Of a DNA stretch of 64,000 nucleotides, positions 39,095 to 58,422 are shown one piece after another. Position 1 is the stretch's first letter. Each line of letters opens with the position of its first letter. Both the position numbers and the translations under genes were made by a program. The DNA lies in IMG/VR virus record IMGVR_UViG_3300017917_002374, positions 248,001 through 312,000 of that record. One strand, 5' to 3'. Under the pieces are notes generated by a model. It saw only the letters and a list, made by a program, of their open reading frames with translations. It did not search any database and was not told the DNA's origin.

Positions 39095-39863
39095 CAATGA
39101 GTATCAAAGTCACGAACACAGTCTTGAAGTACTGAATCTCATAAATCGCTACGAAGATTTCATGGACAGTATTAGCACAGTTGCGGACATGGGCTGCGGA
39201 ATAGGTTCAGACATCGCTTGGTGGGCAAATGCTGAGTATGTTGAAACCACGGAAGATGCACAAGGCAACATCTATGAAACTGTGCGAAAAAGAAACTACA
39301 AATGTTATGCTGTGGATAAAAACACACAACAGGTAGACAAAGAAAACCTACCACCAAATGTGAACTTGATCACGGCTGATTTTGAGCGTAGAAGTCTGCC
39401 CATACCTGTGGACATGATCTGGTGTCATAACAGTTTTCAATATGCAGTAAACCCAATGGCCACACTACGACTGTGGAATGAACAAATGAATGAAAATGGT
39501 ATGTTGTACATCTGCATACCATATCAAAGTACGTATCAAAACAACCGTTTGGTGCTGCGTAGTAACAGTTTTAATTATTACAATCACAACTTTCTCAGCA
39601 TGGTGTACATGTTGGCTGTGAATGGATTTGACTGTCGTGATGCGTATTTTCTCAAGCGCCGTGAAAATCCATGGTTACATCTTGCAGTGTACAAAAGTCA
39701 TCATGCTCCTATGGAACCAGCACAAACTTCATGGTATGATCTTGCTGAACGAAATCTAATCAACGACAGCATGAAAAACAGTTTACACAAGTACGGATAC
39801 ATTAGACAAGAAGACATATTGTATGCTTGGTTAGACAAAGATTTTCACTACGTTGAGGATTGA
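39081..39863 (+). CDS. Class I SAM-dependent methyltransferase
   Basis: VADMGCGIG motif I; DMIWCHNSFQY...NP...L..W...M..NG.L.I. Confidence 0.8.
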   Translation: MDHFNNEYQSHEHSLEVLNLINRYEDFMDSISTVADMGCGIGSDIAWWANAEYVETTEDAQGNIYETVRKRNYKCYAVDKNTQQVDKENLPPNVNLITADFERRSLPIPVDMIWCHNSFQYAVNPMATLRLWNEQMNENGMLYICIPYQSTYQNNRLVLRSNSFNYYNHNFLSMVYMLAVNGFDCRDAYFLKRRENPWLHLAVYKSHHAPMEPAQTSWYDLAERNLINDSMKNSLHKYGYIRQEDILYAWLDKDFHYVED

Positions 39864-39888
39864 CAGCTATTCTGTTTTCGCATACAAT
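39860..39888 (+). promoter_or_regulatory. sigma70 promoter for tRNA cluster 1
   Basis: TTGACA-17 bp-TACAAT, 12 nt before the tRNA. Confidence 0.85.
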
Positions 39889-39900
39889 ACACACTTAATA

Positions 39901-39978
<78 letters not shown>

Positions 39979-40023
39979 GATTTCTTAATAAGTTATTAAC
40001 TTATTAAATATGTAACAAGATTT

Positions 40024-40108
40024 GCGACTGTGGTGAAACAGGTATACACAGCAGACTTAAAATCTGCCGCTGCAAGGCGTGCCGGTTCGATTCCGGCCAG
40101 TCGCACCA
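40024..40108 (+). tRNA. tRNA-Leu(TAA)
   Basis: GCGACTG/CAGTCGC-A-CCA; GCAGA-CT TAA AA-TCTGC; long variable arm. Confidence 0.93.
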
Positions 40109-40114
40109 AGATTT

Positions 40115-40191
40115 CTGACCATAGCTCAGTTGGATAGAGCAACAGCCTTCTAAGCTGTGGGTCGGGGGTTCGAATCCCTCTGGTCAGGCCA
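40115..40191 (+). tRNA. tRNA-Arg(TCT)
   Basis: CTGACCA/TGGTCAG-G-CCA; ACAGC-CT TCT AA-GCTGT. Confidence 0.93.
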
Positions 40192-40267
40192 ACAGATAAA
40201 TAAACTTATGAACAAGCTCTACACTACTGCACGAATACGTAACTATCACACTCAGTGATGGCGTCTT

Positions 40268-40357
40268 CCCACGGTAGCTCAAGGAGAGCAGGAGGCCTTA
40301 TAAGCCTTTCGTCCAGATAAGACCCAGGATGCGGTTCGATTCCGCACCGTGGGACCA
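40268..40357 (+). tRNA. Atypical tRNA with TAT anticodon (nominal Ile) and long variable arm
   Basis: CCCACGG/CCGTGGG-A-CCA; D arm GCTC-AAGGA-GAGC; GAGGC-CT TAT AA-GCCTT; ~21-nt extra arm; T arm TGCGG-TTCGATT-CCGCA. Confidence 0.8.
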
Positions 40358-40398: not shown

Positions 40399-42729
40399 TT
40401 AGAATCCTATTCTAAGCATCACACTGCCTGAGGTGCTTTGAATATCTTGACTGTGCAAATGCACAGCACCTAGAACAACAGACACCTTTTCAGAAAGTTG
40501 CTTGCCCACACCAACACGAGACACAGTGAAGTTGGTTGAAGTTTGTGCTACTTCTCCATAAACATTCATGGTACCAAATCTTCGGTCGTAACGTAAACCA
40601 TACTCGTGACTACGTGTGTTTTGATCCACTGCTGCATAGTTCATAGCAGTGATTGCACTACCAGATTCAGCAACTGCATCTCTGCGATTGTTCTCATGTC
40701 TAGCACCCACAAAAGGTCTAAAGCCCACTAGGTCTGGAGTGTACAGTCTAGCACTGAGCCAATAGTCGTTGCCGTTGGTTCTGCTGCTGTTTGAGTAGCC
40801 CAATGCTGGCAGGCTATGACCGGCTGTGAACACATTGTTGGCATAACCCAACTGTGAACTAACAATCCAGTTTCTAGCCACCCAGGTTGAGTTCAACGCA
40901 AAAATATCCTTGGTCAAACTGCCAGTGGCATCATTGCCGCCCATGTTACTATCAAAGCGACTCAAAGATAAACCTACCACTAGGTTTTCACGCACCAGTT
41001 TGTCTAATCCAAATCCATAACGTGAACTCATGATCAGATAGTTATCAAAACTGTAGTCTGCAGTTTTCTCACCAAACGCATAGAAAGAAACAGTTCTAGC
41101 TGAATCTAAATTGCCTTTGAAACTGAGATCTCCATTGATTATAGAATGTCTATTTAACAAGTTATCAGAACTGAGTAGATTGGCCAAACTGTTTGTTTGC
41201 GACAACACAGCATACTGATCAATTCTTGTGTAATAGCTTTGATCTTCACTGGTAGTAGAAACTGTGTTAAAAGTACTGGTAGTAGTGACCACTTGATTGC
41301 TGGTACTGGTAGTTGTTACCGGAGTACCATTGGTAGTGGTAGTTGTACCATCACTGTATGTGGTAACAGTTGTCGGAGTGGTTGTGGTTGTGGTTGTTAC
41401 AGGTGTGGTCTGAGTTATAACTCTGGTCACAGGAGTTGTGGTAACCACTGTGGTATTACGATTGATTTCAAGAGTTTTTTCAGTTTGTGCACCTCTACTG
41501 TCTGTGACAGTGGTCACACTGGTTGGTGTACCTGCTGTGTCTACAGTTGTACTGGTTGTGGTACCATAACTCACTGAAGTTGACACAATGTTTGCCCCGG
41601 GTGCAGTGCTGACCACAGTAGGAGTCATACTAGATACTGAACCTGGTGTACCAGGGTTGGCAATAGTGCCAGAGCCTGTTGCTACACTGGTTGTGGTGTT
41701 GTTACTGTCATAGTAGTAGGTAACTTCACCAATTTGCACACTGTCACAGGCCAGAGTGCCTAGTGCTGCTTGACAGGCTGCTACTGAACCATACTGATCA
41801 ATGGCCTTGATGCTTGGAAATGTGATAAAGTAATACACATAAGCGTTGGTATTGTTGATAGTGATCATGCTGGTTTGGGTATAACGACCACTAACGTTTT
41901 CCAATGTGGTACTTTGGTTGGCAGTGATTTCTGTCCAAGTCACACCGTCGTTTGATCCATACAGTGTAAACTTGGTAGGGTCACGTGGTACAAAGTCGTT
42001 GGCTGTGGTAAATTTAATACCGTCAATGACCTTGCCAGCATTTAGTGTGATAGTAAAACCAGCATTGGCACGATCAAAATTTAGATACTTGCTGCCACTG
42101 GTTCCATCCACTGCCTGCCCGGCACCTTCGCCTGCTGGACTGTTGTTGCTGGTTGGTGTGATATTGGCAATCATGCTTCCAGTAATTGCTGTGGGATTTG
42201 GTGTGCTGCTTCCTCCGCCGCCGCTGCTGGCTGTTTGTCCTGCTCCTAATGGAGTGGTGCTGGCCCAGGTGTATGAGCTGGCATCAGAACTGGACACACT
42301 GGTATCCATGTTGGTGAAACTGCCACTGGATCCGTAAGCATAGCCTGCACTGGTAGTGATCACTGTACCAAAGAATCCTGATCCAATGTAGAACAGAGCA
42401 TCTGGCCCAATTGCTTGTAGTGTTCCGGTGTTGTGAACCACTTGTGCAAGAGTACCATTTGCGTTGTACAATCCTAGACCGTATGTGCCTGGATTGGTGG
42501 TTGAGTTGAAAAATGCAAAATACTGTCCACTGCTGACCGTAGGATGTTGAAAATTCATATCGTATGGGGCAATGAAATTACTAGCATTCAGGGTGGTGCC
42601 AGACCAGTAATATTGAACGTCAAAAATTTGGTTAGTGCTGAAATGTCCGTCTGTGATATCTGCTTTAGCTGGAAGAATGGATAATAGAAAAACAGCAAGA
42701 GTCACAGCGACTCTGCTGAAGAATTTCAT
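40399..42729 (-). CDS. Autotransporter-like outer-membrane protein (signal peptide, discoidin/F5-8-like domain, Thr-rich stalk, beta-barrel)
   Basis: MKFFSRVAVTLAVFLLSILPAKA signal; AVDGTSGSKYLNF...FTTAND...RDP..F.LYGSNDG..WT domain; Thr-rich linker; ~250-aa amphipathic beta-strand C-terminus ending LRIGF; AGGAG RBS. Confidence 0.8.
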   Translation of the reverse strand: MKFFSRVAVTLAVFLLSILPAKADITDGHFSTNQIFDVQYYWSGTTLNASNFIAPYDMNFQHPTVSSGQYFAFFNSTTNPGTYGLGLYNANGTLAQVVHNTGTLQAIGPDALFYIGSGFFGTVITTSAGYAYGSSGSFTNMDTSVSSSDASSYTWASTTPLGAGQTASSGGGGSSTPNPTAITGSMIANITPTSNNSPAGEGAGQAVDGTSGSKYLNFDRANAGFTITLNAGKVIDGIKFTTANDFVPRDPTKFTLYGSNDGVTWTEITANQSTTLENVSGRYTQTSMITINNTNAYVYYFITFPSIKAIDQYGSVAACQAALGTLACDSVQIGEVTYYYDSNNTTTSVATGSGTIANPGTPGSVSSMTPTVVSTAPGANIVSTSVSYGTTTSTTVDTAGTPTSVTTVTDSRGAQTEKTLEINRNTTVVTTTPVTRVITQTTPVTTTTTTTPTTVTTYSDGTTTTTNGTPVTTTSTSNQVVTTTSTFNTVSTTSEDQSYYTRIDQYAVLSQTNSLANLLSSDNLLNRHSIINGDLSFKGNLDSARTVSFYAFGEKTADYSFDNYLIMSSRYGFGLDKLVRENLVVGLSLSRFDSNMGGNDATGSLTKDIFALNSTWVARNWIVSSQLGYANNVFTAGHSLPALGYSNSSRTNGNDYWLSARLYTPDLVGFRPFVGARHENNRRDAVAESGSAITAMNYAAVDQNTRSHEYGLRYDRRFGTMNVYGEVAQTSTNFTVSRVGVGKQLSEKVSVVLGAVHLHSQDIQSTSGSVMLRIGF
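41250..41700 (-). repeat. Thr/Ser/Pro-rich low-complexity stalk
   Basis: TTPVTTTTTTTPTTVTTYSDGTTTTTNGTPVTTT-type sequence; boundaries approximate. Confidence 0.8.
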
Positions 42730-42875
42730 TTTGTAGAGCTCCTTTAAAAAATTAAGAACGGTAGTTGAAAAAGCAGAAGTAGATTGAATTGTTGTTCTTT
42801 TATATCTACAAGGATATTTAACCCAATAAAGTGTGTTATAATCTAGTGTTACAATAGCCAGGATAAGTACACTTT

Positions 42876-43301
42876 ATGGAACTTTCTGAATACGATCCCA
42901 TGCGTCATCACAGCATTGCCTATCCTATGGAAGTGGGTGCGCCTAAATTTGACTTGGTTCCTGTGACCGAGCAAAAAGATCTCATGATAAATGCTGCTAG
43001 AATGCATGCACAGCAGGAGTACGATCGTATCATGGAAGTGGTGCGTGTGTTGCAAAAACAAGCAGAAGACATTAAAAAACGCTTGGATCTGACCGATCAA
43101 GTGCATGCTGCTGCGTATCAAATGCAACTGTATCCTGGGCAAAAATATTGGTTATTTCATGATTCAAAAAAAGGCGGTACAGGACTAACCATAACTGGGC
43201 CCAAGGATTGGAGTACAGGAGTACCCGATCACTATGAATACATAACACAGATACAATGGTTAGGTGATTATACTTGGAGAGAAGTTACAGAAAATGAGTA
43301 A
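42876..43301 (+). CDS. DUF2452-like protein
   Basis: Coiled segment followed by PGQKYWLF...LTITGP.DW pattern resembling DUF2452. Confidence 0.55.
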   Translation: MELSEYDPMRHHSIAYPMEVGAPKFDLVPVTEQKDLMINAARMHAQQEYDRIMEVVRVLQKQAEDIKKRLDLTDQVHAAAYQMQLYPGQKYWLFHDSKKGGTGLTITGPKDWSTGVPDHYEYITQIQWLGDYTWREVTENE

Positions 43302-43917
43302 TTGGTATAAACTGAAGCTACCACCAGTGCCAACAAAATCAAATGTGGATTTAAGAAAATTTAGTGGCACTGGTCTGTGGAACATTTATACTAATCCTTT
43401 ATCAATTCTAAATGATGAACTGGTTAAAAACTTACAAGAACTAGGCGCAGAACCAGATATAATAGTAGTATTTGAATCCATAGAACAGCAGCGTACAAAT
43501 TTTTTTGTACACAAAGATCTGACATGGAAACAAAATAGATGGAAAACTGTACCTTGTGCTATAAATTGGGAGTTACAACCAGTTTCCACAACCGTCAGTT
43601 GGTTTGACACAAGCAATTGCAAGGAATATTGGCCAGAAGCGGATTTTTTAAATACCGAATGGCCTAGAAATTTTTTGAACAGCGTATCATATTCTGATAA
43701 CATACTGAATTTTGGAATACCTAACGGAAGTGAGTTGATACAGCAGGCAGCAATAGATGAAACAACACCAATTTTATTTAGAACTGATATTGCACATGGT
43801 GTTGAATTTAAATCTCGGACACTGGATAGATTTATGTTGAGTTTACGTTTTAAAAACATTTCAAGTTGGGAACATGCAGTTGAAATTTTTCGTAAAGTTA
43901 TTGTTGACAGCAATTAA
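43294..43917 (+). CDS. Hypothetical protein (possible cupin/2OG-Fe(II)-like fold)
   Basis: ATG 43294 overlaps the upstream stop; H.D...AINW...LFRTDIAHGV...R..LS.RF pattern. Confidence 0.55.
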   Translation: MSNWYKLKLPPVPTKSNVDLRKFSGTGLWNIYTNPLSILNDELVKNLQELGAEPDIIVVFESIEQQRTNFFVHKDLTWKQNRWKTVPCAINWELQPVSTTVSWFDTSNCKEYWPEADFLNTEWPRNFLNSVSYSDNILNFGIPNGSELIQQAAIDETTPILFRTDIAHGVEFKSRTLDRFMLSLRFKNISSWEHAVEIFRKVIVDSN

Positions 43918-43932
43918 AAATATAAGTACAAT
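43904..43932 (+). promoter_or_regulatory. sigma70 promoter for tRNA cluster 2 and the heptose genes
   Basis: TTGACA-17 bp-TACAAT, 10 nt before tRNA-Ser. Confidence 0.85.
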
Positions 43933-43942
43933 AGAAGAATAC

Positions 43943-44035
43943 GGAAACGTGGCTGAGTGGCCGAAGGCAGCGGTTTGCTAAACCGTCGATCAGCTTAAAA
44001 CTGGTCCGTGGGTTCGAATCCCACCGTTTCCGCCA
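43943..44035 (+). tRNA. tRNA-Ser(GCT)
   Basis: GGAAACG/CGTTTCC-G-CCA; GCGGT-TT GCT AA-ACCGT; long variable arm. Confidence 0.93.
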
Positions 44036-44041
44036 AACAAT

Positions 44042-44115
44042 TCCGGAGTAGTATAATGGCAGTGCGACGGTCTCCAAAACCGTTAGTGGGGGTTCGATTC
44101 CCTCCTCCGGAGCCA
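44042..44115 (+). tRNA. tRNA-Trp(CCA)
   Basis: TCCGGAG/CTCCGGA-G-CCA; ACGGT-CT CCA AA-ACCGT. Confidence 0.9.
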
Positions 44116-44121
44116 GATCAA

Positions 44122-44523
44122 ATGAAAAAAATATTTGTAAACGGTACATTTGATATTGTACATCGCGGGCATGTTGAAATGCTTAACTATGCTCGTGGCC
44201 TAGGCGATTATCTATTGGTTGCAATTGACACAGACACTAGAGTACAGCAGCTCAAAGGCCCAACTCGTCCTGTTAACATGCTTGTAGATCGCATGTTTCT
44301 GTTAAACAATCTCAAGGCAGTGGATCGTGTGGTTAGTTTTGATTCTGACCAAGAGTTATCTAGCATAATTAAACAGTATGCACCGGACGTTATGGTCAAG
44401 GGCAGCGATTATATAGGACGAGACATCATAGGTGCAGAGCATTGTGCAGCTATTGAATTTTATCAACTGGTAAATGGATACTCAACAACTCAAAAAATAC
44501 AAGATATTGTTAATCGGCGATAA
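44122..44523 (+). CDS. Heptose-1-phosphate nucleotidyltransferase (RfaE/HldE domain II, HldC-like)
   Basis: NGTFDIVHRGH (HxGH), LKGPTRP, VKGSDY, GYSTT; true start at 44122, after tRNA-Trp. Confidence 0.88.
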   Translation: MKKIFVNGTFDIVHRGHVEMLNYARGLGDYLLVAIDTDTRVQQLKGPTRPVNMLVDRMFLLNNLKAVDRVVSFDSDQELSSIIKQYAPDVMVKGSDYIGRDIIGAEHCAAIEFYQLVNGYSTTQKIQDIVNRR

Positions 44524-45244
44524 TGGTGTTGATCAGTACCAATATGGTACTGTGAATCGTATCAGTCCCGAAGCGCCTGTGCCTGTGCTAGATCTTAGCC
44601 ACACAGTAACCAAGCCGGGCATGGCTGCAAATGTTAGAGAAAATCTCCTAGCTCTGGGTTGTGATGTAATCTTTGAACATGGTCTTAAAACCTGTATCAA
44701 AACTCGTGTGATTGATCTGCGCAGCAAACAACAGTTGATACGCATAGATCAAGATCAAGAATCCAAACCAGTAAAAATAAATCATGCAACTCTGGACCGT
44801 TATGACGCCATTGTGATCAGCGACTATGCCAAAGGATCAGTTGATTATGCTACAGTGCAGAACATACGCTATCATTACACAGGCCCTATTTTTGTGGATA
44901 CCAAGAAAACAGACATGGCCAAGTTCAGCGGTTGTATAATCAAGATCAATCAGTTAGAATACGATAGACTGGTTACTCGGCCGGACTCGCTTACAGACAT
45001 GATCGTCACGCAAGGCGATCGTGGTGCAGAATGGAATGGCCGTCTAATACCAGCAGTGCCGGTGGAAGTGGCAGATGTGTGCGGTGCAGGAGATACATTT
45101 TTAGCAGCTCTTGCATATGGATATCTTGAACACAAGGACATGGAGCTAGCCATCAAATTTGCCTTGCGGTCCAGTTCTGTAACTGTACAGCATGTGGGAG
45201 TGTATGCACCCACACTAGAAGAAATTAATCAGGAGAAATCATGA
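44474..45244 (+). CDS. Heptose-7-phosphate kinase (RfaE/HldE domain I, HldA-like, PfkB family)
   Basis: YGTVNRISPEAPVPV, GMAANV..NL.ALG, KTRV, ISDYAKG, DVCGAGDTF. Confidence 0.9.
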   Translation: MDTQQLKKYKILLIGDNGVDQYQYGTVNRISPEAPVPVLDLSHTVTKPGMAANVRENLLALGCDVIFEHGLKTCIKTRVIDLRSKQQLIRIDQDQESKPVKINHATLDRYDAIVISDYAKGSVDYATVQNIRYHYTGPIFVDTKKTDMAKFSGCIIKINQLEYDRLVTRPDSLTDMIVTQGDRGAEWNGRLIPAVPVEVADVCGAGDTFLAALAYGYLEHKDMELAIKFALRSSSVTVQHVGVYAPTLEEINQEKS

Positions 45245-45402
45245 GTGTGAAAAAAGACAGTAAGCGTGATCCGATGAAACACAAGAGTGGCAAACCACGT
45301 TTAGGCCCACTGAATCTAGAGCAGTTAAACAAACTGATGGAAACAGCCCGTCCTAAAGAACGTGCTAAAATTCAGAATCGTATCCGGGCAATTTCACAAT
45401 GA
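45241..45402 (+). CDS. Small basic protein (53 aa, below the ORF-track cutoff)
   Basis: AGGAG RBS; ATGA overlaps at both ends; MSVKKDSKRDPMKHKSGKPRLGPLNLEQLNKLMETARPKERAKIQNRIRAISQ. Confidence 0.7.
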   Translation: MSVKKDSKRDPMKHKSGKPRLGPLNLEQLNKLMETARPKERAKIQNRIRAISQ

Positions 45403-45761
45403 CCAGACTATCAGGCAGAGTAGAGAAAGGCTGGGGCTCTGAAGAAATTTGGGCCACTAACGACAAATACTGTGGCAAGCTCATGCACTTTAATCAAGGT
45501 GCAAAATTCAGCATGCACTTTCATGCTGTGAAAGAAGAAACTTGGTATGTGCTAAGTGGAAAGTTTGTTGTTCGCTGGATTACCACACAAGATGCTTCTG
45601 TAAAAGAAAGAGAACTAGATGCTGGTGACACCTGGCATAATCAACCATTAGTACCACATCAGCTGATTTGCATAGAAGCAGGCACAATCATAGAAGTCAG
45701 CACTCCGGACAGTGTGGAAGACAACTACAGAGTATTACCAGGCGACAGTCAGATCAGCTAG
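45399..45761 (+). CDS. Cupin sugar isomerase (mannose-6-phosphate isomerase C-terminal/lyxose isomerase-like)
   Basis: VEKGWG.E.IW, SMHFHAVKEETWYVLSG, PH.L, EVSTP. Confidence 0.8.
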   Translation: MTRLSGRVEKGWGSEEIWATNDKYCGKLMHFNQGAKFSMHFHAVKEETWYVLSGKFVVRWITTQDASVKERELDAGDTWHNQPLVPHQLICIEAGTIIEVSTPDSVEDNYRVLPGDSQIS

Positions 45762-46416
45762 CACTATAACGAACATTGCGGTCATCAAGATAACGTTTTT
45801 TTACTTGCTCGTATTCTGGATTTGACGGCAACAGTTCGTTTTCATAAAAAACGTCCTTGGCCCAGTGCGATTTGATATACTCAATTGTATCGGGATTCTG
45901 ACATAGAACACCCAACCCGCCAGAATGCAGAAATCTAATTTTTGGTTGAGGTATGCTAAAAAACACCTGTTCAACTTCAGGAAAGCTCGTAACATCGTGC
46001 ATGAGTAGCACGGTGTTTTCGTGAAAAAATCTACTCCAATTCACAATATCGTGTGTGACTGCTTGTGCTGTGTGTAATCCGTCTAGATGCAAAAGATCAA
46101 TCGGAGAAAACCATAAGGCACATGCAGCGTCAAAGGTGTTTTTCACTAGTTGTACATTATCAAACTTATGCTTGATTTTAAAATCAAGTACTCTTTGATA
46201 TAAGCCTTGATCACGTGCGCCTGCATGAATATCACCTTCAAAAGTATCAATTCCAAACACTTGCCCAGGATTGTTTTCGGCTAGACAGAAACAACTGTAC
46301 CCATTGTCTACTCCTAGTTCAACAGTGATTTTTGGCTGTAAATATTGCACAAGCCATTGTGCAAATCCGCGGTGCCCTTTCCAGGCGCTGTCTAATTCAT
46401 CTATGTTGTGGTTCAT
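45754..46416 (-). CDS. Class I SAM methyltransferase (Methyltransf_24-like)
   Basis: VELGVDNGYS, GIDTFEGD, IDLLHLDGLHT, LMHD. Confidence 0.85.
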   Translation of the reverse strand: MNHNIDELDSAWKGHRGFAQWLVQYLQPKITVELGVDNGYSCFCLAENNPGQVFGIDTFEGDIHAGARDQGLYQRVLDFKIKHKFDNVQLVKNTFDAACALWFSPIDLLHLDGLHTAQAVTHDIVNWSRFFHENTVLLMHDVTSFPEVEQVFFSIPQPKIRFLHSGGLGVLCQNPDTIEYIKSHWAKDVFYENELLPSNPEYEQVKKRYLDDRNVRYSAS

Positions 46417-46495: not shown

Positions 46496-46993
46496 ATGCA
46501 AACAATTGAAGTTTTTTGGTATAAAAATATTCTGGAAGTGCAGATTATAGATCCTGCTATTTTTACCACAAGGAACAGGATCGTGTACAGTAGAACCATC
46601 AAAGTCTATCAGGGTATAGACAATCCCATACATGTTGTGACTAAAAATCAAGATCAAAAGCAGGTGGATTTAACTGGATATGATTTACAAGTGGACATAC
46701 AGGATCCAGAAAATGAAATAACTGTGGAAACTTTCACAGTGAATTTTGTGGTACAAAACAAAGGGCTAGGCACTTTTACTATACCTGCAGGCATAGTTAA
46801 CGGACTAGATCAAAGACACTATGAACTGACAGTTAAGCTGATCAACATTAGCTCAGCAGATGAAACTCCATTGTATATAGACGATAACTACGGACTTAGA
46901 GTACCACTACAAGTGCTCAGCGGATTTTATTCAAATACTCCGGTTGGCTCCACCAACATTGAAGGTGTTATTGATGCAGGATTGCTAGGATGA
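46496..46993 (+). CDS. Virion structural protein (BppU-like adaptor?)
   Basis: TAAATA at 46466; IKVYQGIDNPI...KNQDQK.VDLTG pattern; heads the fibre operon. Confidence 0.55.
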   Translation: MQTIEVFWYKNILEVQIIDPAIFTTRNRIVYSRTIKVYQGIDNPIHVVTKNQDQKQVDLTGYDLQVDIQDPENEITVETFTVNFVVQNKGLGTFTIPAGIVNGLDQRHYELTVKLINISSADETPLYIDDNYGLRVPLQVLSGFYSNTPVGSTNIEGVIDAGLLG

Positions 46994-49900
46994 CCACAGC
47001 TAATATAAAAATAACCAAGGTATTGTTGGGCAGAGGTAACACAGCAATCAGTGCCAACTATACTGGAGTAATGGGCGAAGTGACCATGGACACTACGCTT
47101 AAAACTCTGCGAGTGCATGATGGTGTGATTGTGGGCGGAACCAGACTGGCCACCTATGCTGAATTGTCTAATGTGGCTCTTGGCAATGTTGATCTTTCAG
47201 GGTATGCCACTACATCGCAGATCACAGCAGCCAATGCTGCAATCTCAGCACTACAAAGCAATGCCGCTGCACAAGCAGTCACACTGAACACACTGTTGGG
47301 TAATGCAGTTAGTCAACAGACTACCTTGATTGATCTCATTGCCAACGCCACAACACAAGCACAACAACTGGCAAACACTGGTAGCACCTATAGCAATGCA
47401 AATGTAAAAAGTTATCTTGCAGCGTTTGATGGCAATATCTTGCCCTCGGCCAATGTCGTATACAGTTTAGGTAGTGCAACACAGCAATGGAAAGATCTAT
47501 GGGTCAGTAATGCCACAATATATTTAAACTCAGTACCATTAGGACTGGACGCCACAGGCAATTTGACCTTTGATGGCAATCCATTGGTCAGTTATATCAA
47601 TGGCAATTTGAGCGTTGGCGGCAACAATGTAAACATCAACGGTATAAGTGCTGGTCAAGTGGTTGCCGGCAATTTGATTCTGACACTTACAGATACCACA
47701 ACAATTGATGTTGGCACTGTGGTTGGACCCGCAGGTGCTACTGGAGCACCTGGTGCAGCCGGTGCCACTGGACCACAAGGACCACAAGGCAATGCCGGTG
47801 CCACTGGACCACAAGGCATACAGGGCAACACAGGTGCCGCTGGACCAACTGGACCACAAGGTATACAGGGCAACACAGGACCTACTGGGCCTCAAGGCAT
47901 ACAGGGCAACACAGGCGCACAAGGACCACAAGGCATACAAGGTCCGGCTGGTGCCACGGGCGCACAGGGTATCAGTGTTACACTGGTTGGCAATGTGGCT
48001 ACCAGTGGCAACCTACCGCTAACAGGTAATGCAGGCGAAGCATACATTGTTACTAGCAGTGGTAATCTATTTTTCTGGAACAGCAATTTAAGTGTTTGGG
48101 CAGATATTGGTCCTATCGTAGGGCCACAAGGCGAAGCTGGTCCACAAGGACCCACTGGTGCCACAGGGCCACAAGGTGAAACTGGACCTGCAGGGCCAAC
48201 TGGCCCACAGGGCATACAGGGCAATGTTGGGCCACAAGGCCCACAGGGTATTCAAGGCAATACCGGACCCACTGGTGCCACAGGACCGCAAGGCGCACAA
48301 GGACCTGCAGGCAATACCATTGTGGGATGGAGTGTGGATGTAAACAACCACCTGGTTCCTAACACAGACAACCTACAAGACCTAGGCACACCTACCAGCA
48401 GAGTTAGACACATTTATGTAGGCCCAGGCTCTATCACAGTGGGCAGTTCAGTGATCACGGAATCGGCCACAGGCAAACTGGTGTTGCCTGGGGTGACCAG
48501 AGGCGTAAGCTACACCATTGATGAAGTGGAAGAAAAAGGCGATCAGAATCATGTGTTCAACGCACCGCCTGTGATTGTTGATGGCGGGCACTTTGCTGTG
48601 CTACAGGGAGTGATTGCACCACCTGGCGGATACCAGGCACCTGAATACAGTGTGGATCAACTGAATGATGACGGTGAGATTGATGGTATTACCATAGACA
48701 GTGCTGGTGCTGGTATTGACCAAGCTGTGGCTGCCAAGATGCGTGAATTCATGCGAGCCTATGTGGGCAATGATCCGGATCCTATCACAAACTTTAATGC
48801 TTCGGACTGGATACAGATTCCGTTCACAGTGAGTACAGAAGCTGCGGATGTCGAGTACGAAAACGCAGGTGCAGACCTAGGTGACTTCTCCATAGATGGC
48901 AGTGTACTGGAAGCAGACGAAGCCACAATCAGAACCAACGATGGCGACCTGACACTGGAATCAGACAGTGATGTGTTTGTAAAATCTTCTGGTGGCACTC
49001 ACATGTGGGAATTTAGCACCAATGGCCGGCTGTATCTTCCTGCCACTGGCACAATAGAATTTCCAGACGGGTCCATACAAATCACTGCCAACGCAGGCGG
49101 GGGTGGTGGCGGCAACATAGCCGGGCTTACCAGCTCTGTGGGCAATCAAGAAGCATCTCACGGATCAACTGTTTACAGCTTGACTCTTAACAGTGGCAAC
49201 GATGACAATGCTATAATCCAGCTATATAAAGGCACCGGAAACGACAATCCAGCCATATCAATTGGACAGGAAATTGGCGGGTTCCACCAGGCCAATGTTG
49301 TGGCAATTGGTAACTACGATGTTGGGTACAACTCTCTACCAGGAGGCGTGTACATTGGCTATGGAGCAGGCTACAACAATGTAGAAAGCCCGCAAGGTTT
49401 ACATGCCATTGCTATTGGATCCAAGGCAGCTTATACCTTTGCCACAAACAACAGTATCACACTCAATGCAACTGGTAACGATTTAACCCCAGATGAATCA
49501 GGTTTGTTTATCAAACCAATTCGCGAAGAACAGTATGATGATGCTATCTTATATTATAATGTACAGAGCGGAGAAGTAACCTATGCAGCTAATCCTGGCA
49601 GCGGAGCCTCAATAGGTAGCACTGCACCAACCGCAATAAATGGTCGTTTGTGGTACAACACTGAAGATGGCCGTACCTATGTGTATGCCTTGGACACCTG
49701 GATTGATGCCAATCCCCCAGTGGTTCCGGGCAACATGGTTGGCTATGGTCAGGATGGTAACATCACACTCAACGAAGATGCCAGAATCAACTATGCCAAT
49801 GGTGCAAGCATAATAAACAGCGTTTACGGTGATGAACAAGTAGCAGAATTCTTGAGTGCGTACACTGGTAACATTGGTAAAATAGGTTCTGATCCGCTGG

Positions 49901-51267
49901 CTATCACAGCCGCTAACATTAGATTGACCAGCGACAATGAAACCTGGGCCTTTAGCTCAACAGGCAATATCGTATTCCCTGACGGAACCCAACAGGCCAC
50001 TGCCTACACAGGCGGAGATGGCGGCAGCAGCTATGGCAATGTAGAACTAGCAGCCTTTATGAGCGACTATCAAGGTAATATCTATATCAACAGCGAAGGC
50101 AGTGGCTTGATTATAGATGCCGCAGGTGATCGTCGTGTAGGCTTTATGAAATACTTTGGCATTGAAGCCGGCTTTGTTCATGCCAATGGCCCAACAAAAT
50201 CCATTCCATTCCGTATTGGGCGAGTGGCTGCGGATGATATCACACAGGCAAACAGTTCAGTATTCACAACAGAAATCTTTATCAGCAATGTTGGCAAGAT
50301 TGGTATTCACAATACCACCCCTGCATACGATTTAGATCTAACTGGAAACGCTAGAGTAAGTGGTAGCCTCCTAATAGGCACCAACTCAACAATCAGCAAC
50401 GATGGTGAGTTCAGACTCTGGGCAACAGACACAGACATCACGGTGTATCGCAATGGTCAAGATGGCTACGGCGTCAAAGCCGGAAACATTGAAACCTATA
50501 CTGACAATGTTCTAAGAACCGTAACCAATAGCCAGGGCTTTGAACTCAAGACTGGTAACATAACTATCCCCAACGACAAAGGAGTGGTGTTTGCTAACGG
50601 TGTGAACATACTCAGCACCATTGTTGGAATAACCAGCATCAACACATCAGTTACAACCAGCTCCATCAACGATGAAAGTGGAGATTTCAGCTATGGCTCA
50701 TTGTCATACGACTACGCGGTAAACGGTGTCACATCTGGTGGGTTCACCATAGACTACTCTGCTCCGCTGGTACATGGCAATGTGGATGTGAATGTTGGCA
50801 ATGTGATTGCCACCAATATCAGTGTCAGTGGCAACCTAACTGTTGATAACACATTGGTAAACAGAGTGTATTTGCTTGAAGCCTATGCCAGTGTGACCTA
50901 CACCTTGCCAGGTAGTTTCACTGAAGATGTGTGTAGATACAGCGTTGTGAGTAATGCCGTCAATGTACCAAGTGCGTGGTTCAACACCTCAACTTATACA
51001 TTCACACCTCTAAAGGCTGGCTACTGGGAAATTACCGCCGCTTATGATGTTTATAGAAATGCTGAAGCAAGTATGGTGATTAAGAAAAATACCACGATTG
51101 TGGCTTCAGCTGGCAGTTTCAATGCAGTGGCCCAACAGGTAACAAAAATCATCTATCTAAATGGTTCAACTGATTATGTACAAATTTACAATTTTGGTGG
51201 GGCCGCACTAGAAAGATCACAATATGATGGCAGGTCTTGGTTCCAGGCACGATGGGTAGGCGCATGA
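46990..51267 (+). CDS. Collagen-containing tail fibre (1425 aa) with C-terminal C1q-like domain
   Basis: N-terminal GRG...[16 protein letters not shown]; two G-X-Y blocks; FPDG.Q.TA motifs; C-terminal [11 protein letters not shown]...YLNGSTDYV. Confidence 0.85.
47725..48312 (+). repeat. Collagen-like Gly-X-Y repeats (two blocks)
   Basis: [16 protein letters not shown] units; DNA repeats such as GGACCACAAGG and CAGGGCAACACAGG. Confidence 0.95.
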
Positions 51268-55501: not shown

Positions 55502-57961
55502 ATGCCAATCACACAGGTCCTACTAACTTCAACTGTCACAGCGGCTCCACCTCCACCTCCTCCGCCCACACCTGATGGGCAGTACTACAGTGATGAAACA
55601 CTGTTGACCTGGGGCAGTGTGGGAGTGGGACAAAACAAGCCCTCATACAATTCCAGTTACAGCTATCCAGACAATACAACTGTTGCACCAATTTGGGATT
55701 TCAATGGCACCAACCAGTATATGACCACTCAGGTGACCAATGGATACACACAGATATACATGAACCTGTGGTTCTATCCCACTGCTGCTGGTCGTGTTAT
55801 TATGACCATACAAGGGTCATTGGTAGAAGACTCAGGATATACTCACTCAGCACTGGAGATAGCTGCCAACCAAACTGTGATTGGTGCTTTCTGGGCCGGC
55901 ATGAATCTAGTGAGTGTTAACACAGCCAACTCAGTCACACTCAATGCCTGGAATCATATCTATTTTAGACAGAATGCCAATGAGATACTGTTACAGTTAA
56001 ACGGCGGCACAGCGGTCACGGCCAACAACACTTGGTCGTTGCCCACGCCTGCAATGGTAATAGGTATTGGAACTACCTCATCAATGAACAGTGGATACAG
56101 TGCGAGATTTGAAGGCAGCCTGGCAGAGTTCCGCATGAACTCAACCAACACGCCCAGCAACTACACTTTCACTAGAACCAAGTATGAAGCACCGCAGCAG
56201 GTTATCTATGATGACTTTACCATTGAGTGGTGGCAGAAAGCAGAATCCATTGGTGTGAATACTCGTCCCTGGGCCATTGGCTTGTTGGGATCCGCATCTG
56301 GTCAGGTAGTATCAATCAGTTATGAAGGCAACGGTCGTGACTATTTCTGGATCAACGACAGCTTCCCTGCTCAACTGGCAGACAGACCTGTGAAGAATCA
56401 CTATGGCATTGGTTGGGAACACATGGCCATAGTGCGCAAAGACAATGTGATTAAACTGTACAGCAATGGTACCAGTTATCTGACCTGGGCAGGCGGCGGA
56501 CAAGCCATAACAGCAACCAACGCAGACCTAGTGGTAGGCACAGGTGAGATACCCAACGGCAACTTCCAAGGTTGGATCAAAGACCTGCACATCATCAAAG
56601 GCTACGCAAAATATAATGCCAACTTCTCAGTGCCAGTATTGCCCGTACAACCACAGACTGGTACTGTGTTCCTCCTGCCAGCCATGAGTTCTGGCACAGC
56701 ATTTGATGATGTTGTAAGTTACAAGGCGGCTATACTGAGCAATACACCAACTTACAGTGAAGATGATCCATTTACATATCCAGGTGCTACATTCACTGCT
56801 ATAGGATATGGTAATAATCTCATAACACCGGCGTCAACGCCACCTAATTTACGAGTTGGTCTCCTAGTCAGCGATGGAGCAGGGTGGAGCGACTATATCA
56901 TTGATCCAAATTATTTTGGTAACCTACAGTTTTCAAGCCTACCAGCAAGCACACCGCCTGAACTTGTATACACTGTGTCTGAAGACTTAACCAGTGTCAC
57001 ACAAGGTACCAATACCTACGGTGGCAGTGGTCCTAATTGGAATGTAGACTACAGCAGTACCAACTTCAATGTGGAACTGTTAAAAGTAAGAGTGGGCTGG
57101 ACAGTGGCCTATGGTGAAGATATACTAGGCACAGTGACTGGCAATGCATATCTTATTACACCAGAAGTTATCAGAATAGGTGTAGATTTTGATCCTGGTA
57201 CAGCAGGCGGTTTGACATTTACATATCTGCCTCCTACATATGGTGGTAGCATACGCTTTGACGCAGGTGACCGTATCAACTATGGCAGCAGTGTGGACTG
57301 GGCCTTTGACATAGACGCCATTACCACAGGCAACATCACACTGAATCTAGATGCCAATGACATCAGCAGCTATACCGGCAGTGGTAGCACCTGGACTGAT
57401 CTGTCAGGCAACAACAATGCCACCTTGATTGGCACTCCCTACTGGGACAACGGACCTCCGGCCTACTTTGAATTCAACGGTATCAATCAGTATGCCACTG
57501 TGCCTGGCACCAATATTGTGCCTGCTGCGGCCTATACCAAAATGGTATGGTTCCGTATCAACACATTCTCAGCAGACAACAACCTGATCAGCAGCGACAA
57601 TGGTGGACACTTCATGTATTTCAATCAGACCACCACACTGTATGCTGGTCACAGCAATGTGTTCCCCTACAATGCGTTTGGTTCGGCCACAACCTTTAGC
57701 ACCAACACCTGGTACTGTGCCACAGTCACATTCAGTGTGGCCAATGGTATCAAACTGTATGTGAATGGTGTGTTAGACGCCAGCGACCCCAGCTACCAAA
57801 CTCCACACAATCAAAACGGCAATACCAACATTGCCTGCTTTGGTATAGGTGGAAATCTGTTGAATGGTCGTATTGGACGCCTGATGTGCTATGGTAAAGA
57901 ACTCACTGCACAGGAAGTGTTGAACAACTTCAACGCCACAAGAAATCGCTATGGTGTTTGA
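55502..57961 (+). CDS. LamG/concanavalin-like multi-domain virion protein
   Basis: Three LamG-like units (WFYPT...WNHI; DFTIEWW...WEHMAIVR; LDANDISSY.GSG.TW.DLSG...NFNATR.RYGV). Confidence 0.8.
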   Translation: MPITQVLLTSTVTAAPPPPPPPTPDGQYYSDETLLTWGSVGVGQNKPSYNSSYSYPDNTTVAPIWDFNGTNQYMTTQVTNGYTQIYMNLWFYPTAAGRVIMTIQGSLVEDSGYTHSALEIAANQTVIGAFWAGMNLVSVNTANSVTLNAWNHIYFRQNANEILLQLNGGTAVTANNTWSLPTPAMVIGIGTTSSMNSGYSARFEGSLAEFRMNSTNTPSNYTFTRTKYEAPQQVIYDDFTIEWWQKAESIGVNTRPWAIGLLGSASGQVVSISYEGNGRDYFWINDSFPAQLADRPVKNHYGIGWEHMAIVRKDNVIKLYSNGTSYLTWAGGGQAITATNADLVVGTGEIPNGNFQGWIKDLHIIKGYAKYNANFSVPVLPVQPQTGTVFLLPAMSSGTAFDDVVSYKAAILSNTPTYSEDDPFTYPGATFTAIGYGNNLITPASTPPNLRVGLLVSDGAGWSDYIIDPNYFGNLQFSSLPASTPPELVYTVSEDLTSVTQGTNTYGGSGPNWNVDYSSTNFNVELLKVRVGWTVAYGEDILGTVTGNAYLITPEVIRIGVDFDPGTAGGLTFTYLPPTYGGSIRFDAGDRINYGSSVDWAFDIDAITTGNITLNLDANDISSYTGSGSTWTDLSGNNNATLIGTPYWDNGPPAYFEFNGINQYATVPGTNIVPAAAYTKMVWFRINTFSADNNLISSDNGGHFMYFNQTTTLYAGHSNVFPYNAFGSATTFSTNTWYCATVTFSVANGIKLYVNGVLDASDPSYQTPHNQNGNTNIACFGIGGNLLNGRIGRLMCYGKELTAQEVLNNFNATRNRYGV

Positions 57962-58422
57962 TGTTTACACTCAGTCAAGTTGAAGTAGACCCTGGAGTGG
58001 CAGCGCAGGTTGTTGCTCTGTTTCAACAGCTGGATCGTGGACGCGGTGGTCCAATGGGCACCTGGCACGGCCAGCGACTGCGTGACAATCCTTACCCATG
58101 GTTTCAATCCACCTTTGATCGTGTTACAGCGGCTCTGAGCCATCTGCGCATAGATGAATGGTGGTTCAACTGTGGCCAGGCAGGCGACGAATATCGTTGG
58201 CACGAGCATGTGCCCTATCCTTGGGCTGCTGTGCTGTATGTTCAAACGCCAGAAAACTCTGGAGGCATAGAATTTCGCCGCCAGGAGGAGTATGCTGCAT
58301 TTCAACCAGTAGCAGGTGATTTTCTGTTGTTTTCGGGTAATCTTGCTCACAGGGTTTTGCCCAATAAAAGTGCAGATTATAGAATAAGTGTGGCGTTCAA
58401 CTTAACCTCCAGATCTAAATAA
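57961..58422 (+). CDS. 2OG-Fe(II) oxygenase superfamily protein
   Basis: W.N...HEH...AVLYVQ.P..SG.I.F...GD..LF...L.H.V.PN.S...RISVAFN. Confidence 0.8.
   Translation: MFTLSQVEVDPGVAAQVVALFQQLDRGRGGPMGTWHGQRLRDNPYPWFQSTFDRVTAALSHLRIDEWWFNCGQAGDEYRWHEHVPYPWAAVLYVQTPENSGGIEFRRQEEYAAFQPVAGDFLLFSGNLAHRVLPNKSADYRISVAFNLTSRSK

Follow-up and report, generated by a model that had tools for sequence, protein, structure and literature searches.

A 64,000-nucleotide stretch of the IMG/VR virus record IMGVR_UViG_3300017917_002374 (hereafter the window, bases 248001-312000 of a 354,959-bp record with direct terminal repeats) carries, at positions 40399-46416, a gene for a type Va autotransporter and, 1.4 kb away, genes for ADP-heptose synthesis, i.e., HldC, HldA and a cupin. 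As a whole, the region is probably best explained as an independent autotransporter next to a widespread ADP-heptose cassette, which feeds GT9-family transferases encoded elsewhere in the genome; the region would thus be a mosaic of two independent accessory units. A preliminary description, made from the sequence alone, had paired the two as one phage-encoded surface-heptosylation system. All the elements that it described are present at 40399-46416, and its interpretation stands as far as heptose-donor genes and transferases are concerned, whereas the link to the autotransporter is not supported. Phage-directed changes of the infected cell's surface are poorly documented, and phage heptose genes are usually listed as "LPS" (lipopolysaccharide) auxiliary genes without a defined pathway or target.

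Distribution of the autotransporter and the heptose cassette

The two units consist of the following genes (aa, amino acids; ORF, open reading frame; SAM, S-adenosylmethionine).

40399-42729, minus strand: type Va autotransporter, 776 aa, assigned from Pfam, an AlphaFold2 model and Foldseek
44122-44523, plus strand: HldC-type heptose-1-phosphate adenylyltransferase, 133 aa (TIGR02199, E = 4.5e-36; phrog_7878)
44474-45244, plus strand: HldA-type heptose-7-phosphate kinase, 256 aa, shortened (TIGR02198, E = 1.8e-44)
45241-45402, plus strand: small basic ORF, 53 aa, with no assigned function
45399-45761, plus strand: metal-binding monocupin, 120 aa (phrog_7851)
45754-46416, minus strand: Methyltransf_24 SAM-dependent methyltransferase, 220 aa (PF13578, 64 bits)

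The HldC start (44122) lies 1.39 kb from the autotransporter start codon. Co-occurrence was scored over 81 viral IMG/VR loci with an HldA-like kinase, 79 loci with a GT9 gene and 13 loci with an autotransporter homologue. Among the 81 kinase loci, HldC is present in 79, the cupin in 75 and an HldD-like epimerase in 69; the autotransporter is present in one, and that one belongs to a near-identical relative (contig G006, with 84-91% amino-acid identity, which was fetched twice, as loci L005 and L006). Seen from the other side, L006 alone among the 13 autotransporter loci also has the kinase, the cupin-side genes and a DUF2452 gene, so that the kinase is found on 1/12 independent autotransporter contigs, namely G006. 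No autotransporter occurs in the GT9 loci (0/79), and the gene context around autotransporter homologues differs between relatives. Ten near-complete jumbo phage genomes, scored for both genes, fall into all four possible classes.

Autotransporter present, kinase present: G000 and G019
Autotransporter present, kinase absent: G001 and G009
Autotransporter absent, kinase present: G020, G021 and G024
Autotransporter absent, kinase absent: G007, G008 and G011

Over these ten genomes (2/2/3/3) the autotransporter and the kinase are distributed independently, with no association. The complete 367-kb relative G001 has the autotransporter and lacks both the kinase and GT9, and the GT9-bearing genomes G007, G008, G011 and G020 have no autotransporter of any family. 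The pairing of autotransporter and heptose genes therefore fails the co-occurrence test that the preliminary description had itself proposed. A functional tie to the cassette is not supported by co-occurrence, and the autotransporter stands as an independent accessory gene; the adjacency is best read as the chance landing of two accessory genes in one plastic, tRNA-adjacent region. The pairing idea should not be carried forward without new evidence.

By contrast with the single joint occurrence of the autotransporter, HldC, HldA and the cupin are one copy of a common phage cassette (HldC, HldA, cupin and HldD, with or without GmhB). Phage carriage of ADP-heptose genes is not new, because viral enzymes of this kind have been reported to be active and because marine virome papers treat such genes, describing them as envelope-related auxiliary genes (PMC9238414, PMC12379486); the present cassette is another copy of a known class.

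The heptose enzymes

HldC is 43% identical over its full length to the C-domain of Escherichia coli HldE, and its motifs FDIVHRGH and LVNGYSTT align with FDILHAGH and FEDGCSTT of that enzyme. Its best match in the Protein Data Bank (PDB) is Burkholderia HldC (5x9q). The kinase, whose gene overlaps that of HldC by 50 nt, is 29% identical to the N-domain of E. coli HldE and keeps both the GDxxxDxYxxGxxxRISPEAPVPV motif and the ribokinase-type GAGD motif, which are invariant in the phage alignment. In the PDB it matches Burkholderia HldA (4e84) best, at an E-value of 7.7e-21 vs. 1e-7 for ribokinases. With Burkholderia HldC and HldA as best PDB matches and the diagnostic motifs kept, the split HldC- and HldA-like genes named in the preliminary description are upheld as genuine heptose-pathway enzymes. 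In the bacterial ADP-L-glycero-beta-D-manno-heptose pathway the same split form is found in Burkholderia and Neisseria, and homologues of HldA, HldC and HldD with catalytic motifs are all present in this phage. We note four differences from the bacterial pathway, i.e., there is no SIS-type GmhA or GmhB, the cupin is a constant partner, HldC precedes HldA, and the kinase is shortened.

Some features of the two enzymes weigh against this assignment. Both score under the NCBIfam equivalog cut-offs (HldC 123.8 bits vs. 181.5, with TIGR02199 still its best family; kinase 152 bits vs. 345), and the kinase, at 256 aa vs. about 315 for HldA, is some 60 aa shorter, with two deletions relative to HldE. 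Together with the neighbouring 4,6-dehydratase, C-methyltransferase and O-methyltransferase, which suggest an unusual final sugar, they would fit an alternative in which the kinase and the nucleotidyltransferase act on a non-heptose sugar and the heptose label is an annotation artefact. We consider this very unlikely. The HldA- and HldC-specific motifs are kept (RISPEAPVPV, GAGD, HxGH and GYSTT), HldA and HldC are the best PDB matches by wide margins, the cassette epimerases match E. coli HldD down to 2e-61, and the linked transferases belong to the heptosyltransferase fold group. Moreover, a commentary reports ADP-heptose synthesis by viral enzymes homologous to these (PMC11461863).

The nucleotide used by HldC may be read from the residue five positions before STT, which is Leu in this phage, Phe in E. 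coli HldE and Arg in 55/79 phage homologues (loci L106-L184). Our reading of the same commentary is that an Arg at this position (the STTR5 state) is linked to the use of CTP or UTP (PMC11461863). The likely product of this phage's HldC is ADP-heptose, because its residue is Leu rather than the CTP/UTP-linked Arg; in this position it differs from most viral homologues. The Arg in those 55 proteins suggests that CDP- or UDP-heptose may be a further product of many phage cassettes.

Two commentaries on Tang et al. (Science 2024) describe viral heptose enzymes that make ADP-heptose in vitro and call their role unknown (PMC11461863, PMC11573728). The present cassette is of the same enzyme class as those viral NDP-heptose enzymes. 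The commentaries state that the phosphatase is absent from viruses (PMC11461863, PMC11573728), whereas GmhB-like ORFs are found here in 16/81 viral cassette loci (phmmer with E. coli GmhB), and a small HAD-like protein in 9 more.

The cupin and the missing pathway enzymes

The absence of recognisable GT9, GmhA and GmhB genes from the window, as the preliminary description had it, was confirmed. Neither GmhA nor GmhB was found in the rest of the genome, where the preliminary description had proposed to look for them, either by PF13580 and TIGR00213, both of which match in control genomes, or by phmmer with E. coli GmhA and GmhB. GmhA was also not found within 10 kb of any cassette (0/81, phmmer with E. 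coli GmhA).

In the cupin family, H40, H42, E47 and H87 are invariant, corresponding to His/His/Glu/His metal ligands. The top PDB match of the cupin profile is D-lyxose ketol-isomerase, and its matches also include L-ribose isomerase, D-lyxose/D-mannose isomerase and a mannose-6-phosphate isomerase. PF01050 matches 9/16 members at E <= 0.01, and in the ESM Atlas the neighbours of this cupin are clusters of viral proteins with the automatic name ManC/mannose-6-phosphate isomerase. Type II phosphomannose isomerase and the D-lyxose/D-mannose isomerase cupins possess the same His/His/Glu/His site and perform the chemistry that would be needed here, i.e., conversion of a ketose to a manno-aldose. 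The six-carbon analogue of the GmhA reaction is the conversion of fructose-6-phosphate to mannose-6-phosphate. We infer that the cupin may be the cassette's sedoheptulose-7-phosphate isomerase, replacing GmhA, because it is a constant partner of the cassette, GmhA is never beside it, the protein resembles mannose-6-phosphate isomerases, and the chemistry is analogous.

We regard the case for this assignment as evenly balanced. The assignment depends on pathway hole-filling and on sub-threshold family matches, this cupin itself scoring 22.0 against PF01050 vs. a cut-off of 23.6, and it differs from the known isomerase cupins in being a 120-aa stand-alone domain, for which sedoheptulose-7-phosphate is a putative substrate only. 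In the literature we found no paper on a cupin-type sedoheptulose-7-phosphate isomerase or on phage protein heptosylation. The cupin is nevertheless a concrete candidate for the missing isomerase and would be a non-orthologous replacement in a pathway that attracts study for two reasons: it is an antibiotic target, and it supplies ADP-heptose, an agonist of ALPK1.

A side observation concerns the 107-114-aa gene annotated as "phosphoheptose isomerase" in the cyanophages S-CAM1 (L002:6731-7054) and P-SSM2 (L003:6716-7060). Its product starts with DxDGT and ends with GKP...DD, and because of these motifs it appears to be a small HAD-type phosphatase and a candidate GmhB analogue instead of an isomerase of the SIS type, so that its annotation is probably wrong.

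Relation to the heptose cluster of cyanophages

The closest described arrangement is the LPS/heptose cluster of T4-like cyanophages (P-SSM2 PSSM2_307-313; S-CAM1 SXBG_00216-222), which has the same order of HldC, kinase and cupin and likewise stands beside a tail fibre. In S-CAM1 and P-SSM2 the full order is GT9-like, carbamoyltransferase, HldC, kinase, small HAD-like protein, cupin, reversed epimerase of the short-chain dehydrogenase/reductase (SDR) family, and tail fibre. At the amino-acid level, HldC of this phage is 40-47% identical to its cyanophage counterparts, the kinase about 42% and the cupin 35-40%.

There are five differences between the cyanophage cluster and the present cassette. 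First, the cyanophage cluster includes a GT9-like gene, whereas in this phage GT9 and the epimerase are dispersed elsewhere in the genome. Second, the slot of the small HAD-like protein is occupied here by the 53-aa ORF, which is not homologous to it; the idea that this ORF is a remnant of the cyanophage "phosphoheptose isomerase" was rejected. Third, the methyltransferase sits where the cyanophages have their HldD-like epimerase. Fourth, this phage has no carbamoyltransferase. Fifth, its host is probably a proteobacterium rather than a cyanobacterium. The only GenBank phage homologue of the methyltransferase lies inside a glycosyltransferase ORF of Synechococcus phage S-SRM01, so that glycan methylation fits, and the protein is probably a glycan O-methyltransferase.

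GT9 transferases and epimerase elsewhere in the genome

The preliminary description had proposed a search of the rest of the genome for a heptosyltransferase and HldD, and this search yielded a GT9 enzyme, a weaker candidate in which tetratricopeptide repeats (TPR) are combined with a GT9-like C-terminus, and an HldD-like epimerase.

Genome 325298-326281: GT9 enzyme, 327 aa (PF01075, 45.6-46.6 bits vs. a cut-off of 22)
Genome 114633-116108: TPR protein with a GT9-like C-terminus, 491 aa, a weaker GT9 match
Genome 141069-141950: HldD-like epimerase, 293 aa (match to E. coli HldD, 1.2e-24)

The 327-aa enzyme has the marks of the GT9 family, i.e., the PF01075 match, a GD catalytic motif (G34, D35), a DSGP-type donor motif (D229, S230, G231, P232) and a GT-B fold, the residues of both motifs being invariant or nearly so. 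Its model (predicted local distance difference test score, pLDDT, 91) gives structural Z-scores of 26.1 for 3tov, 23.4 for WaaF, 23.2 for TibC and 21.4 for WaaC, with the next fold at 12.8. Four C-terminal cysteines (C276, C279, C292 and C302) are invariant in the family and recur in distant cellular GT9 rows, and this Cys4 cluster is absent from E. coli WaaC, WaaF and WaaU. In TibC, C339, C342, C358 and C370 form an iron finger (PMC4358343); the phage cysteines, a putative finger, are placed comparably. The N-lobe of the phage enzyme, on the acceptor-binding side, is shortened relative to the cellular GT9 rows. Its gene lies 32 kb downstream, beyond the window, in an island that also encodes an SDR epimerase, UDP-galactopyranose mutase (Glf), a 4,6-dehydratase, two 2-oxoglutarate (2OG) oxygenases, a sugar C-methyltransferase and a DUF5672 protein. 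A tblastn search of GenBank phages with the enzyme found nothing.

The link between the transferases and the cassette is seen in other phages. On contig G015 (locus L077), a single operon holds the dehydratase, p240, the C-methyltransferase, GT9, a GT9-like gene, HldA, the cupin, an unknown gene, HldC and the HldD-like gene, and thus fuses two clusters that stand apart in this genome. The kinase is found within 10 kb in 23/79 GT9 loci, a GT9-type gene is found in 23/81 kinase loci at a median distance of 2.1 kb, and in 6 loci the cassette directly adjoins a homologue of the TPR-GT9-like protein. These neighbourhoods suggest that the GT9-family enzymes elsewhere in the genome probably use the heptose. 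The phage GT9 family with the Cys4 finger, linked to the cassette in this way, offers enzymes to assay for what phages heptosylate.

Several observations weigh against the account in which the cassette supplies these transferases. GT9, the epimerase and the cassette lie 32-180 kb apart here, so that the link rests on the neighbourhoods of other phages. A phosphatase was searched for in this genome and not found. The kinase is absent from all four near-complete genomes that were selected by GT9, which means that GT9 needs no phage cassette. The 491-aa TPR protein reaches 20.6-20.7 bits against PF01075 on its own (cut-off 22) and 22.1 only together with neighbouring matches in the same frame. 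As to expression, no RNA run was shown to contain the sequence of the region, only DNA runs. Since GT9 is more widespread than the kinase and these four genomes lack the latter, GT9 phages without the kinase must draw on host ADP-heptose, and the cassette is therefore an optional supply module.

An alternative dispenses with a dedicated phage transferase altogether and takes the cassette as a plain metabolic booster of host ADP-heptose for the LPS core. This is consistent with the common treatment of marine-phage heptose genes as host-envelope auxiliary metabolic genes (PMC9238414, PMC12379486), with the 58/81 cassette loci that have no GT9-type gene in the DNA covered, and with the complete genome G021, which has the kinase and no GT9 match. 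However, many loci and the cyanophages have the cassette directly fused with GT9 genes, the present phage itself has one GT9 above the cut-off and a second, weaker candidate, and the absence of GT9 from a locus is weak evidence where many loci are short fragments. We judge the booster explanation to be quite unlikely.

Two further clusters were seen around these genes. Genome 110495-116108 (L022:4495-10108) encodes a ClpB-like double AAA+ chaperone (763 aa), then an Anp1-like putative glycosyltransferase and the TPR-GT9-like protein. On contig G015, just upstream of the glycan/heptose operon (L077:3308-5839), lie genes for a PstS-like phosphate-binding protein and a phosphate-selective porin O/P, the latter being another phage-encoded outer-membrane protein.

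Proposed pathway

The cassette would be organised as one unit in the order sigma-70-like promoter, tRNA-Ser, tRNA-Trp, HldC, HldA, 53-aa ORF and cupin, with the glycan methyltransferase on the opposite strand. In the proposed sequence of reactions, the cupin would isomerise sedoheptulose-7-phosphate to D-glycero-D-manno-heptose-7-phosphate, and HldA would then phosphorylate C1. The 7-phosphate would be removed by a host phosphatase, which is proposed because this phage has no GmhB, and HldC would finally make ADP-heptose. The HldD-like epimerase, encoded at 141 kb of the genome, could then yield the L,D form. The donor would be consumed by the GT9-family heptosyltransferases outside the window, i.e., the 327-aa enzyme and perhaps the weaker TPR-GT9-like candidate.

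The acceptor of the heptose

A host envelope glycan, such as the LPS core, is a plausible acceptor, which we put forward tentatively. Glycans of the envelope and LPS are the usual acceptors of GT9 enzymes, and LPS remodelling is the long-standing usual interpretation of this class of heptose genes in cyanophages (see also PMC12379486). The GT9 model is as close in structure to WaaF as to TibC, the most constant GT9 neighbour, p252, has a weak lead to WavE (LPS core), and neither the cassette nor GT9 shows a general association with fibre genes.

A second possibility, which is more doubtful, is that the heptose is transferred to other proteins, most plausibly to virion fibres, by the TibC-like Cys4 GT9 enzyme and the TPR-GT9-like protein; the virion would then be glycosylated. 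The latter combines TPR with a GT9-like domain, and an architecture of TPR and glycosyltransferase is typical of protein-directed transferases such as OGT. The putative Cys4 finger of the phage enzyme, placed like that of TibC, is not found in the E. coli LPS heptosyltransferases; the shortened N-lobe and the two 2OG oxygenases flanking GT9, which are of the prolyl-hydroxylase type, point in the same direction. The cassette also abuts tail-fibre genes, both here and in S-CAM1 and P-SSM2. However, this adjacency was rejected as a general rule, since collagen-like ORFs are found near 2/81 cassettes and 0/79 GT9 loci (for ORFs of at least 800 aa the counts are 17/81 and 1/79). Moreover, the Z-scores for WaaF (23.4) and TibC (23.2) are nearly the same, distant cellular GT9 proteins with no assigned function carry the Cys4 motif too, and the GT9 match of the TPR protein is by itself sub-threshold.

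One model advanced in the preliminary description was that ADP-heptose is made to O-heptosylate the passenger of the phage's own autotransporter, in the way that AIDA-I is modified by AAH and TibA by TibC, and it now appears highly improbable. In its favour, 1.4 kb separates the two units both in this phage and in a close relative, a long Thr-rich segment forms part of the passenger, the four invariant cysteines of GT9 are placed like the TibC iron finger, and TibC is among the top structural matches. This genome resembles the AIDA-I/AAH and TibA/TibC systems (BAHT family) in that it encodes both an autotransporter of type Va and a GT-B transferase of the ADP-heptose type with a Cys4 cluster towards its C-terminus. 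However, we note three differences from these systems. First, aah and tibC adjoin the genes of their substrates, whereas the phage GT9 gene lies 35 kb from the autotransporter gene and is not co-inherited with it in relatives. Second, the 327-aa GT9 enzyme lacks the N-terminal beta-barrel of TibC, and the alignment spans TibC residues 80-393 only. Third, the modelled passenger is not a beta-helix of the AIDA/TibA type. The AIDA-I/TibA parallel drawn in the preliminary description is not supported, and the distribution given above (1/81 kinase loci, 0/79 GT9 loci, the autotransporter of G001 without kinase or GT9, and four GT9 genomes without any autotransporter) argues against it as well.

A broader version of the protein-directed models combines a self-sufficient ADP-L,D-heptose pathway, with the cupin in place of GmhA, and a Cys4 GT9 enzyme, possibly aided by the TPR-GT9-like protein, that O-heptosylates virion fibres or the autotransporter. 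This combination is unlikely; if true, it would be a phage-borne protein heptosylation system.

The autotransporter

The 776-aa protein with a signal peptide, a discoidin domain, a Thr-rich part and a beta-barrel, as reported in the preliminary description, was recovered, and the structure model together with Pfam identifies it as a type Va autotransporter. The order of its domains is signal peptide, N-terminal beta domain, discoidin lectin-like domain, Thr-rich beta-hairpin stalk, linker helix and 12-strand barrel. Pfam finds the F5/8 type C (discoidin) domain (PF00754, 34.8 bits vs. a cut-off of 28.2) and, in a six-frame search, the barrel (PF03797, 43 bits vs. a cut-off of 26). A sequence search of the PDB gave no match, and structure prediction was therefore needed. 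The AlphaFold2 model, computed with 28 homologues as input (mean pLDDT 77), shows a signal helix, a linker helix at residues 505-519 and a 12-strand barrel at residues 547-775, and the passenger is modelled as a beta-sandwich, the discoidin domain and long Thr-rich hairpins, with no beta-helix. The best PDB matches found by Foldseek are the translocators of EstA, NalP (template modelling score, TM, 0.81), AaaA, Hbp, EspP, BrkA and AIDA-I. The protein ends in ...RIGF, with a terminal Phe, and thus has all the features of type Va, i.e., a Sec signal peptide, a passenger, a linker helix, a C-terminal 12-strand barrel and a terminal aromatic residue. The gene stands alone on the minus strand, and its product would be placed in the outer membrane of an infected Gram-negative cell, where the passenger would display the lectin-like discoidin domain on the Thr-rich stalk.

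The family has more than 1377 homologues, and phage contigs of 237-367 kb carry many of them. Type Va autotransporters whose passenger is lectin-like are widespread in uncultured freshwater jumbo phages, and the family is little described. In GenBank phages, a tblastn search with the autotransporter gave only a weak match to the barrel, in Synechococcus phage DSL-LC03. No relatives were found in 185,579 cellular species genomes, which is a weak test in that the search patterns were taken from the Thr-rich stretch.

Many members of the family (P0015, P0020-P0030) are about 578 aa long and cover only about half of the 776-aa query. The passenger appears to be modular, because in these members Pfam marks the barrel and not the discoidin domain. 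A separate observation is that a distant cytidylyltransferase, about 31% identical to HldC and with no kinase alongside, is encoded about 2 kb upstream of the autotransporter homologue in 5 of the 12 other loci (L009, L010, L014, L016 and L017).

Flanking genes, tRNAs and promoters

The remaining features in and around the region are as follows.

39860-39888, plus strand: sigma-70-like promoter TTGACA-N17-TACAAT, 12 nt upstream of the first tRNA cluster
39901-40357, plus strand: tRNA cluster Met(cat), Leu(taa), Arg(tct), Ile(tat), from ARAGORN
42876-43301, plus strand: DUF2452 protein, 141 aa (PF10504, 44 bits)
43294-43917, plus strand: viral protein of about 207 aa with no Pfam match
43904-43932, plus strand: second sigma-70-like promoter TTGACA-N17-TACAAT, 12 nt upstream of tRNA-Ser and tRNA-Trp
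43943-44115, plus strand: tRNA-Ser(gct) and tRNA-Trp(cca), between p217 and HldC, from ARAGORN
46496-51267, plus strand: 165-aa protein and 1425-aa collagen-repeat tail fibre, the start of the fibre block, adjoining the cassette

ARAGORN bore out the interleaving of tRNAs with the genes of the preliminary description, i.e., Ser and Trp before HldC, and Met, Leu, Arg and Ile beyond the 3' end of the autotransporter gene. The exact sequence TTGACA-N17-TACAAT occurs twice in the 64-kb window vs. 0.04 times expected. Because both sites stand directly, i.e., 12 nt, upstream of tRNA clusters, they suggest that the phage tRNAs are transcribed by host RNA polymerase. HldC starts 7 nt past the end of tRNA-Trp, and a single transcript from the second promoter could cover both tRNAs and the heptose cassette, co-transcription being suggested by this layout.

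The DUF2452 protein accompanies the heptose cassette in 7/81 loci. The ESM Atlas structural neighbours of the protein of about 207 aa are 2OG-Fe(II) oxygenases, PhyH and Asp/Asn hydroxylases (TM 0.5-0.59), which gives a lead, and a lead only, to a double-stranded beta-helix of the 2OG-Fe(II) oxygenase-like fold. Homology of p217 to P0241 of L077 is not claimed, the BLASTP E-value being 0.87. Among the tail-fibre genes, a 154-aa ORF at 57958-58422 of the window resembles cyanophage 2OG-Fe(II) oxygenases (P-SSM2 PSSM2_314 and PSSM2_319, E about 5e-6).

Genome context

The genome encodes sheath, tube, large terminase, SSB and UvsX. Its terminase shares 54% identity with the terminases of the Pseudomonas jumbo phage PA5oct and of PA5oct relatives. 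No psbA was found in the genome. A cyanophage host was set aside on these two grounds, the terminase being nearest to PA5oct and other proteobacterial jumbo phages, and the virus, a freshwater jumbo myophage, probably infects a proteobacterium. A megablast search of GenBank phages with the region as query gave no match. Several independent studies have metagenomes of ponds, lakes, rivers or soil that contain DNA near-identical to this phage, and the gene order of the region is reproduced on each side of tRNA-Trp in contigs of other freshwater studies. The short-read assemblies of those studies break at tRNA-Trp, and this break point is bridged by the second IMG/VR contig, G006.

Two parts of the genome outside the window were recorded in passing. 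At genome 134249-141950 (L004:8249-15950), the HldD-like epimerase belongs to a cluster that also encodes a GDP-mannose-dehydratase-like SDR, GTP cyclohydrolase I, a phosphoribosyltransferase, a second cytidylyltransferase, a QueD/PTPS-like protein and an HIT protein; the presence of FolE and QueD in this cluster suggests a 7-deazaguanine (DNA modification) pathway. On the minus strand, genome 194894-213760 is occupied by a single ORF of 6288 aa.

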